In this document: piece after piece, positions 44,236 to 47,200 of the stretch
How positions within the stretch are numbered: the first letter of the stretch is position 1
How the letters are laid out: each line of letters begins with the position of its first letter
Origin: Macrostomum lignano
Lineage: Eukaryota
NCBI GenBank assembly: GCA_002269645.1
Contig: NIVC01002632.1
Coordinates: 90,381 to 154,380, forward strand
DNA length: 64,000 bases
Reading direction: 5' to 3'
Notes under the pieces: model-generated
The model's database searches: none
Seen by the model: the letters and a program-made list of their open reading frames with translations, nothing else
What the model was told of the DNA's origin: nothing
Program-made: the position numbers and the translations under genes

Positions 44236-47200
44236 CTAAGAACCAGTGTCCAAATGGCCTTGCACAACCAAAGCGGTACCAGGTTCCGCGTCATCACTAA
44301 CCGCCGAACCGTGACAGTCTCTCCGATGTCGAAGAATCTCCGCTGTACTGCCGCCAAACCGGCAGCGACAGCGCGGGCAAACAGACTTGCGCTGCTGCTG
44401 CTCCGACTGCTTCTGCTGCTTCTGTTGCAGGAGTTCATCTTCGAGATCCTTATCATGTTGAGCAGCATCATCGCTAGCGCTTCTCCGACAATCAGTCTGG
44501 TGAGCCAATCGACCAGCTAAGTTCAGCACAAACTCCTGCTGGCAGACACGACACAGCCACAGGCGTTCCAAATAGCTGGCGTGACTGTCTTCAAGGTTGT
44601 CTGTGTTGAGGCTCGATTCTTCACAATCGGCGCTGTCGTCAGTGAGAATGCCTAACGATAACCAGTTGGTGACTGTCTCTACGCTGGATGATGCGCTGGC
44701 GGAAGCGTCGACACAAGCGGAGCTGTATGCAATCTGGGAAGCGACTAGATGGCTTGCTGCTGAGCAAGACAACTGGAGTAAAGCGGTGGTGTGCACAGAC
44801 AGTAAGAGCGGCCTCCAAACCATCAACAGGCAGGGAAAGAATCCGCTGGCCAGGCTTATTAGGTCGGAGCTCGGTAAGCTGGACCAGAATGAAAAGCGGG
44901 TGACTTTGCTCTGGATCCCCAGCCACTGCGGGATCAGAGGGAATGAGGAGGCAGATAAGGTGGCGGGAGAGGCGGTTAACGAGTTGAGGCAAGACGAAGT
45001 GAAGGTGCTAGGCAGCACGGTCGCGAAGAGGGCGAGGCGGATCGGGAGACAGATTTGTGAGTGGAGGCATGAGAGAATGAGGAGGGTGTATGCAAGCACG
45101 AAAGGCAGGAAGAGAGACCCGGGGTTCAACTGCAGAGAGGATGAGGTGAGCTACAGAAGAATGCGCACGGGACACTCGATTGAGCTGGCTGCCTACAGGA
45201 GAAGAATTGGACTGCAAGAGGAAGGACGGTGCAGGGGTTGCGGCATGGAAGATGAGACGATGGAGCACATCTGGGACTGCCCGGCGACGGATGGCAGAAG
45301 GAGGATGTGGTGCTGTGAAGGCATGCAGGCGGTTTGCGAGCAACCGGAGGAAGCCCGGAGTTACTGGGAATGGTGGAGAAGCCTCCCGCAGTGGGGAGCC
45401 AGTGTTGAGGACGAAAATTGACAGGACGGGGTAGCAGTGTAGTTGGCATCAACAACAACAACAACAACAACAGCAGCAGCAGCAGCAATAGTAGCAGACG
45501 AAGCCATTCGAACCTCGTGCGGCAATTGGGCGTGCAAAAATTCCGACAATTTATTAGCTAATAGTCTTTGTTCAACTCTATCTGACGGGTCTTTGTGGTC
45601 TTGTTGCTGTTGCTGCTGTAATTCTTCATCTCGATTGTCAAGGCGACGCAATAGCCGACTAAGTCGGTTGCCAAGGCGACTACGAAGAGCGACAGCGGCG
45701 GCTAGAGCAGATTCGGCAACGTCGGCACTGGACGGTCGCAACTCGAGCCAGCCGTCGCACAGGAGTCGCGTGCCCGACGCGTTGCCATGGATACGGGTGG
45801 CGAACAGCAGCAACGCTGGCAGGCCGGGCACCGGCAGCGGGTGTACCAAGTAGGGCTTGGTGGTCTCCAGGATGCCCAAGTAAGCCACCAATTGGCCCTG
45901 GTCAGGTCGCCAGCCCCCGGTTGTCAGGGGATCGTACGGGTGAAGCAGGACCAGCCGATGGGCGGCAGTGTGGAACACCTGCAGCGCGGGTTCGGGCCGT
46001 TTCTTTACCAATTAGTACTGATTAGAACTAACTGTTGACGACAGCCAGATTTGCTGACAGACACTGACACAGAAATAAAGCCAGCAGTCAGGCCCGAAGC
46101 ACGACCCCTGACACGTTAGGTCAGACAGACACTAAGGCAGACAAACAGACGGACAGACAGGCAGACAGACACACAGACAGACAGACAGACAGACAGACAG
46201 ACAGACAGACAGACAGACAGGCAGGCAGACAGACAGACAGACAGACAGACAGACAGACAGACAGACAGACAAACAGACAGACAGACACTCTGACAGACAG
46301 GCAGACAGACAGACAGACAGACAAACAGACAGACAGACACTCTGACAGACAGGCAGACAGACAGACAGACAGACAGACAGACAGACACCCACCATCTCCC
46401 CGCTGCGGCTGGAGTTGGCCGAGTCCGGCACGGCCAGCTGCGGGTGCAGGCCGGCCAGCAGCACAGCTTTGACCAGGCCGGCCTCCCTGCCTGTGAGCCT
46501 CCGCCGCTCGGCCAGCCGGTCTAAGTCGTGGCTCAGCCGGAACTCCAGATCCCGGATGTCGCTGCCGATATCGCCGCTATCATTGCCGTCGCCTTTGTCG
46601 TCGTCGCCCAGTTCAAGAGCGTCCAGCCGAAGGACGCGACGGCGCTGACGCCCGGTGCGACTTTCGCGTTTCAATGCGGCAAGCCGTCGGCGTTGGTTTC
46701 TGAAAGATTATTCAAATAGCGACACCGTAGCAAAATGCATTTTCGATACATATCGGCAAAAGTTTTGAGTCGTTTTAAAAGTAAGATTGAACTCATAAAC
46801 TCGAGCAATGCGCTTATGAAATGCCAAGATGTATAACAGAGGTAGATTCGAGTAGCTCATATGGAGATTCGAGTAGCTCATATGGAGATTCGAGTGGCTC
46901 ATATGGAGATCTGAGTGGCTCATATGGAGATCCAAGTTGCTCATATGGAGACCTGAGCGGCTCATATTCAGTTTTTCATAGTTTACGAAAAAAATTGAGT
47001 TCCAGTTTCTGAGATTTTTAAATTGGATTAACTCAAAAACATCAGAGAACATTTACCTATCCTCACTGAGACGCGCCCCATCGGACCGGTGATCAGTCGT
47101 GGCTCCCTCTTTCTTAGAATCCTCCCTGCCGGCCTCGTCCCAGTCGTCCCTATCAACCAGGCCGCAGTCTTGCAACAAGCGGCCGAATTGGCGTCTCAGC

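Follow-up and report, generated by a model that had tools for sequence, protein, structure and literature searches.

The 64,000-nucleotide stretch of the Macrostomum lignano genome analysed here (GenBank assembly GCA_002269645.1, contig NIVC01002632.1, positions 90,381 to 154,380; hereafter the window, numbered from its first letter) carries on its minus strand a gene for DHX34, whose last coding exon is interrupted by the 5'-truncated 3' end of a long interspersed element (LINE) lying antisense to it. DHX34, also called SMGL-2, is a helicase of nonsense-mediated mRNA decay (NMD) and RNA surveillance. The gene runs from 54696 to 44236 and was delineated by tblastn of orthologues together with reading of the junctions. 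Its nine exons are joined by GT-AG junctions throughout, the joined reading frame is open, and apart from the insert it contains zero stops or frameshifts. The parts of the gene are as follows.

46393-54696, minus strand: DHX34 exons 1-8 (tblastn of orthologues, GT-AG junctions)
54696-54384, minus strand: exon 1
54288-54203, minus strand: exon 2
53104-52709, minus strand: exon 3
51154-50729, minus strand: exon 4
49846-49621, minus strand: exon 5
48716-48454, minus strand: exon 6
47490-47057, minus strand: exon 7
46699-46393, minus strand: exon 8
45471-46002, minus strand: exon 9, proximal part, where the OB-fold region ends and the C-terminal domain starts (orthologue alignment, blocks VDxWLE and LSEFL)
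44236-44708, minus strand: exon 9, distal part, with the variable linker, a conserved block, both fingers and the normal stop (10-orthologue alignment, tblastn of orthologue P0060)

The helicase core, used as a 547-residue query, finds its top matches, which are 57-63% identical and have E values as low as 2e-222, in proteins of molluscs, arthropods, vertebrates and others, nearly all of the named matches being DHX34 and one being labelled DHX15. The model contains the helicase motif QRKGRAGR, and the proximal part of exon 9 gives a weak Pfam match to OB_NTP_bind. With the insert removed, the empty-site model encodes 1151-1153 residues in nine exons, compared with 1143 residues in human DHX34 (PMC4743010) and in line with the ~1140-1150 residues of a full-length architecture. 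By these matches the host gene is an orthologue of DHX34 and is otherwise intact. Protein searches with the empty-site last exon and with the helicase core found no DHX34 protein from M. lignano itself.

Most of the DHX34 introns and the 3' flank are filled with tandem arrays (42919-44146, 46122-46387, 47680-48256, 50027-50657, 51243-52407 and 53134-54066), which comprise a 28-mer repeated 44 times, (CAGA)n repeated 66 times, purine-rich AGAGG-type repeats, a 43-mer repeated 14 times, a 16-mer repeated 73 times at 100% identity and a 35-mer repeated 27 times. The perfect homogeneity of the 16-mer array suggests either a very recent expansion or a collapse in assembly. The (CAGA)n/(GTCT)n microsatellite of intron 8 (46122-46387) recurs in a long minus-strand open frame (36334-37410), where it is read as a CLSVCLSV... 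stretch; simple repeats of this kind give rise to long spurious open reading frames in this genome.

The sequence beyond the insert continues the gene. The minus-strand open frames at 46011-45364 and 45150-44239 share one phase, and a reading made earlier from the sequence alone, which had placed the two pieces of DHX34 in the same frame and proposed that deletion of 44713-45468 (756 nt) would reunite them, is borne out: the deletion yields a single open frame to the normal stop at 44238-44236. The 158-residue piece past the insert matches the Pfam family zf-C2H2_DHX34 (PF24485; E=6.6e-05, 23.3 bits, below the 27-bit gathering cut-off), and tblastn with orthologue P0060 independently recovers 44580-44296 (E=2e-04). 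The C-termini of ten orthologues align with that of the window gene through the motifs LLETTKPYL, CDxWLE and LSEFL, a (V/L)xxYLTYxCL-like block and both Cys/His fingers. None of the ten ends before the insertion point; all run on through both fingers in alignment with the downstream window sequence. Since the Pfam match, the tblastn match and the ten-orthologue alignment agree, the frame past the insert is, on homology, the C-terminus of DHX34. Searching a word-indexed database with the empty-site last exon returned zero homologues at E<=0.001, because the region is too divergent. The two fingers lie as follows.

44488-44553, minus strand: zinc finger 1, CRVC...RLAHQTDC (Cys-Cys-His-Cys, aligned with W-x-C-x2-C ... 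RLQH-x3-C of orthologues)
44314-44379, minus strand: zinc finger 2, CPRC...EILRHRRDC (PF24485 at residues 112-133 of the piece; T-x-EIL-[KR]-H-[KR] conserved in 10/10 orthologues)

The downstream frame is undecayed and keeps all eight zinc ligands. The point of insertion falls in a poorly conserved linker of variable length, between a region of the form Y..RRLLP...LY.GP and the block KGG...YLTYNCL.

The insert itself has three parts, all oriented on the plus strand.

44709-45421, plus strand: 5'-truncated LINE coding fragment, running from within an RNase H domain (its distal two-thirds) through a linker and a CCHC knuckle to the natural stop (Pfam, Protein Data Bank (PDB) matches, identity to the M. 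lignano protein P0124)
45422-45449, plus strand: 28-nt LINE 3' untranslated region, between the LINE stop and the tail
45450-45470, plus strand: (CAA)7, taken as the LINE 3' tail (direct reading; Val codons on the minus strand)

An open frame of 235 codons (705 nt) extends from 44714 to 45418, ends ...WGASVEDEN and is closed by a stop at 45419-45421. It matches Pfam RNase_H at profile positions 42-140 of 141 (E=2.9e-07), and RNase H domains of the PDB match the same part. Catalytic residues are present as Glu (AEL), Asp (CTDS), His (PSH) and Asp (NEEAD), and direct reading places a CCHC knuckle, CRGC-x8-H-x3-C, downstream of RNase H (RTGHS...). The N-terminal ~40 profile positions are missing, including the first catalytic Asp, which in P0124 belongs to an FTDGS motif. 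An intact RNase H plus CCHC frame had been described here. The reading frame is intact and the knuckle present, but the RNase H domain is not intact, because the profile positions before 42 were lost by 5' truncation. By homology and anatomy, the insert is the 3' end of an apurinic endonuclease (APE)-type retrotransposon without long terminal repeats (non-LTR), 5'-truncated and antisense within the last exon of DHX34.

The limits of the insert are ambiguous by a few bases. The LINE 5' junction lies within 44709-44713, where identity to P0124 starts with Ser-Thr-Gln (TCG at 44709-44711), and removal of 44709-45470 (762 nt) restores the DHX34 frame as well as the earlier 756-nt excision, which works and is one arbitrary choice between inserts that fit alike; the span 44713-45470 is 758 nt and not a multiple of three. 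No target-site duplication is found, the longest word common to the flanks being 5 nt and not at the junctions. Such duplications are common and not obligatory for truncated LINEs, and their absence is known in truncated or repair-mediated insertions.

An exhaustive HMMER search with the fragment finds 5360 relatives at E<=0.001. Most of them are C-terminal parts of APE-reverse transcriptase (RT)-RNase H proteins, whose long members have the architecture (PHD)-APE-RT-RNase H-(zf-RVT) (Pfam Exo_endo_phos, RVT_1, RNase_H and zf-RVT); a word-indexed search gives three weak metagenomic matches only. The best relative, P0124, is the UniRef entry A0A1I8J844 of M. lignano (entry name n=2), and in two stretches all 129 of the 129 aligned residues are identical to it. 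Between these stretches the P0124 model lacks ~100 residues, and the same gap is bounded in the window by GT and AG, so that it would look like a predicted intron of the gene model. P0124 must come from another locus, because it carries upstream LINE domains that do not occur at the DHX34 site (~1290 residues are missing there); judged from the protein identity, at least one further member of the family is nearly identical. Neither blastn nor tblastn detects a second copy in the window, and neither the LINE plus-strand open reading frame (in two start-codon variants) nor P0124 is on record in public contigs.

Upstream of APE the P0124 gene model also carries a 2A-like DVEVNPGP and, after it, PHD-like Cys/His fingers between which there appears to lie a PWWP domain (PF00855, residues 307-392, E=4.4e-10). 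Its relatives P0125, P0144 and P0163 have the PHD and lack the PWWP. Either the gene model of P0124 is chimeric, or this LINE carries a chromatin-reader domain.

The insertion had been called young, and this age is supported by the comparison: under a rough neutral model, 0 replacements in 129 codons corresponds to ~1% or less divergence between the copies, and an undisrupted 705-nt frame to ~3% or less since insertion. The identity to P0124, the intact frame, the purity of the tail and the undecayed 157 downstream codons of DHX34 are together the reasons for which we regard the insertion as young.

The earlier description of a (CAA)7 tail fused to a host CAA/CAG run agrees with the letters, the tail at 45450-45470 being exact and directly followed by the host run (CAG)5 CAA TAG TAG, with (CAG)5 at 45471-45485 and the CAA unit at 45486-45488. 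On the minus strand (CAG)5 is (GCT)5 and encodes Ala5 of DHX34. With the insert removed, the window contains only three (CAR)>=4 runs, and a random site and orientation would adjoin one of them with a probability of ~6e-05, hence the adjacency of tail and run is not attributed to chance. It is consistent with annealing of the tail to the target, although one copy is no proof of it.

The events that we infer are these. The reverse transcript of an RNase H-bearing APE-type non-LTR retrotransposon of the A0A1I8J844 family would have been primed where the DHX34 coding strand was nicked in the (CAG)5CAA run, the poly-Ala stretch of the poorly conserved C-terminal-domain linker. With the LINE antisense to DHX34, the coding strand would have been the nicked one and its end, ...GCTGCTGCTGCTGCTG-3', the primer. 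The (CAA)n tail of the RNA could pair with this CTG/TTG primer in 2/3 positions per unit, and fully if the host run had CAA units, of which it now holds one. Early termination of reverse transcription would have left only the last ~0.76 kb of the LINE copied, with the 5' end joined without a target-site duplication.

Alternatively, the (CAA)7 may have belonged to a host (CAA)7(CAG)5 microsatellite (Val7-Ala5 in antisense), and a tail-less LINE may have landed in this fragile repeat or been captured at a break in it. From one copy the boundary between tail and host cannot be fixed, the host run itself includes a CAA, and target-site duplications may be missing after endonuclease-independent capture at breaks. 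However, a Val7 run would be unusual in a protein linker and 0/10 orthologues show one, and the CAA units repeat perfectly, unlike the mixed host run. Moreover, RNase H-bearing I-type LINEs typically end in triplet tails, as the Drosophila I factor does in (TAA)n. We therefore consider a host origin of the triplets unlikely.

The 3' ends of the distant relatives on contigs L001 and L002 are too distant to show the tail of the DHX34-inserted family. On L001, a JGI metagenome contig that encodes P0001 (a relative ~35% identical to the fragment), positions 1043-1246 extend ~165 nt past the stop to (GA)7 CAGCAGCAACAGCAGCA at the contig end. This is another RNase H/CCHC LINE 3' end adjoining a CAG/CAA run; the contig stops there, and it supports no conclusion.

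Insertions of 5'-truncated LINEs into coding exons are known elsewhere, for example the human L1 in factor VIII exon 14 and the Drosophila I-factor and Doc insertions. The DHX34 insertion shares with these the marks of target-primed reverse transcription, a 3' tail at one junction and premature termination. It differs in that (CAA)n takes the place of a poly(A) tail, a target-site duplication is absent, the element belongs to an RNase H-bearing flatworm family and the host is neopolyploid, so that the fitness cost may be small. With LINEs of the I superfamily (I, Ingi, Nimb, Tad1, LOA, R1) it has in common an RNase H downstream of RT, a C-terminal CCHC and a trinucleotide 3' tail, which is CAA here and (TAA)n in the Drosophila I factor. 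The features that would speak for a place in the Ingi/I clade are those of P0124 (the 2A-like motif, one long frame in the gene model and RNase H), as read by eye; the DHX34 fragment has no RT. Surveys by Kojima and Fujiwara reportedly describe the microsatellite-specific LINEs Waldo and Mino (R1 clade), Dong (R4), and Kibi and Koshi (Tx1). In these, as at DHX34, the 3' end adjoins a microsatellite akin to the tail of the element, which annealing of tail and target would lead one to expect, but most of their copies have the target repeat on both sides, whereas the one copy in DHX34 has unique coding sequence at its 5' flank. LINEs with a 2A sequence and a single open reading frame have been described in Ingi and other clades, e.g. 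Ingi-1_AC (PMC3708506), and P0124 resembles these by its N-terminal 2A-like DVEVNPGP, the PHD-like fingers before APE and its one long frame in the gene model, as read by eye. The PWWP domain of P0124 was not seen in the relatives examined. A literature search found nothing specific on (CAA)n-tailed LINEs or PWWP-bearing LINEs.

Read as DHX34, the interrupted exon terminates soon after entering the LINE.

45361-45363, minus strand: premature TAA stop in the DHX34 frame, within the antisense LINE (first in-frame stop)

This is the stop that the sequence-only reading had pointed out, along with the removal of two C-terminal Cys/His fingers; both can be read directly, and the orthologues carry the fingers downstream of this point. 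Further in-frame minus-strand stops in the insert lie at 45195-45193 and 45153-45151. The predicted product as written has 1030 residues, 994 from DHX34 and 36 foreign, and would lose 157 residues including both fingers while keeping the helicase core and the OB region. By the established exon-junction rule, exon-junction-dependent NMD of the DHX34 transcript itself would be unexpected, because the premature stop is in the last exon. The antisense insert contains no premature poly(A) signal: in a signal scan AATAAA occurs only at 45555 (coding, upstream of the insert) and at 44225, 11 nt past the normal stop codon.

In human cells DHX34 needs no domain other than the C-terminal one (residues 957-1143) to bind SMG1; when that domain is deleted, UPF1 binding persists, but UPF1 phosphorylation is no longer stimulated and NMD is no longer rescued (PMC4743010). 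The predicted M. lignano product is like this human delta-CTD mutant (Melero et al. 2016, PMC4743010) in that the C-terminal domain is lost and the helicase core kept. It differs from it in being natural, in removing about the distal two-thirds of the region equivalent to that domain and in adding the 36 foreign residues. By analogy, the truncated copy has most likely lost its function or kept UPF1 binding only, and it should be non-functional in the SMG1 scaffold role.

This consequence would be avoided if the insert had become an intron, removed from DHX34 pre-mRNA by splicing that is wholly or mostly in frame, with a protein bearing both zinc fingers still being made. Phase-compatible GT/AG pairs do exist. 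The pair proposed earlier as compatible but weak, GT at 45427 and AG at 44724-44723, is indeed 705 nt apart and in phase, and scores -5.6 bits for the donor and 0.9 bits for the acceptor with a simple generic metazoan matrix, the scale used for all sites here. Better pairs combine the donor at 45513 (GAG|GTTCGA) with acceptors at 45130, 44773 or 44734 (6.2-8.5 bits). The net inserted length is also a multiple of three, and the 157 downstream codons with all zinc ligands are undecayed. However, the best candidate donors by the insert, 45513 and 45364, reach 2.9 to 3.0 bits, so that every candidate lies below all seven scored real DHX34 donors (6.4 to 11.4 bits; the seven real acceptors score -2.3 to 9.0 bits). 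An in-frame net length is expected by chance one time in three, and an undecayed downstream sequence is equally expected of a very recent insertion. Rescue by splicing thus appears improbable to us.

The genome in which this gene lies is that of a neopolyploid with ~75% repeats (PMC10733133, PMC5704211), in which it is no surprise that one copy of a conserved gene should be disabled by an insertion. Its assemblies are acknowledged to be difficult, with ~75% repeats, paralogous blocks and unexpected heterozygosity (PMC10733133), and the LINE could have been joined to DHX34 artefactually through low-complexity triplets, or be present in a minority of collapsed haplotypes or homeologues. The 3' junction does lie inside the CAA/CAG microsatellite, and a search for an independent public contig of the locus found none. 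Against this, both flanks belong to one exon in the same orientation and frame, host sequence is neither missing nor duplicated beyond a few ambiguous bases, the 5' junction lies outside the repeat, and the anatomy (5' truncation, natural stop, untranslated region, tail) is exactly that of genuine retrotransposition. An artefact is therefore very improbable.

A pre-existing intron at the insertion site is rejected, since LINE homology and tail fill the whole gap and leave no non-LINE intronic sequence over.

A recent retrotransposition of a LINE 3' fragment into the last exon of DHX34, probably disabling one copy of the gene, is in our view the likely explanation of the locus. The truncation is probably tolerated through recent polyploidy or because the insertion is heterozygous, and we infer that intact copies lie elsewhere in the genome. 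Several points weigh against this explanation. The lack of a target-site duplication is atypical for many APE LINEs. The (CAA)7 could be partly or wholly derived from the host, the 3' end of the family being known from one copy. The evidence is that of one assembly sequence, and the copy number of DHX34 in M. lignano is drawn from the literature. Finally, the splice scores come from a generic metazoan matrix and not from one trained on flatworms.

As a kind of mutation the DHX34 insertion is ordinary and real, a standard 5'-truncated LINE insertion in a coding exon. Read as a recent retrotransposition, it offers a dated, unambiguous example of gene disruption following polyploidy, and, for the study of effects on NMD, a DHX34 whose C-terminal domain is naturally truncated. 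The near-identical copies suggest recent or ongoing activity of this LINE family in an organism that serves as a model for regeneration, and the triplet tail adjoining a coding CAG/CAA run suggests a target preference.

A broader proposal is that the insert belongs to a Macrostomum LINE family which is active and finds its way to transcribed gene bodies through its PWWP reader, with (CAA)n tails priming on coding CAG/CAA repeats. Were it true, exonic hits would be systematic for the family and would drive the loss of duplicate genes after the recent whole-genome duplication. A truncated DHX34 that binds UPF1 and is blind to SMG1 could, in addition, dampen NMD in a dominant-negative manner. With one gene model and one insertion as its basis, this proposal is a long shot.

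Elsewhere in the window, a 200-residue open frame at 62874-63476 on the plus strand has a Cys/His-rich end (WFEKHPWMHY...VQCFSCLTAYK) that resembles the TTF-type zinc fingers of hAT-like transposases; it gives no Pfam match at E<=0.001. Two minus-strand open frames, at 25119-25604 and 26299-27231, each match one half of a galactosyltransferase (Pfam Galactosyl_T positions 3-76 and 109-192, respectively) and are probably one intron-split gene. At 28602-30560 on the plus strand, an uninterrupted open frame of 652 residues encodes an amiloride-sensitive sodium channel of the DEG/ENaC type (Pfam ASC, E=3.6e-61).

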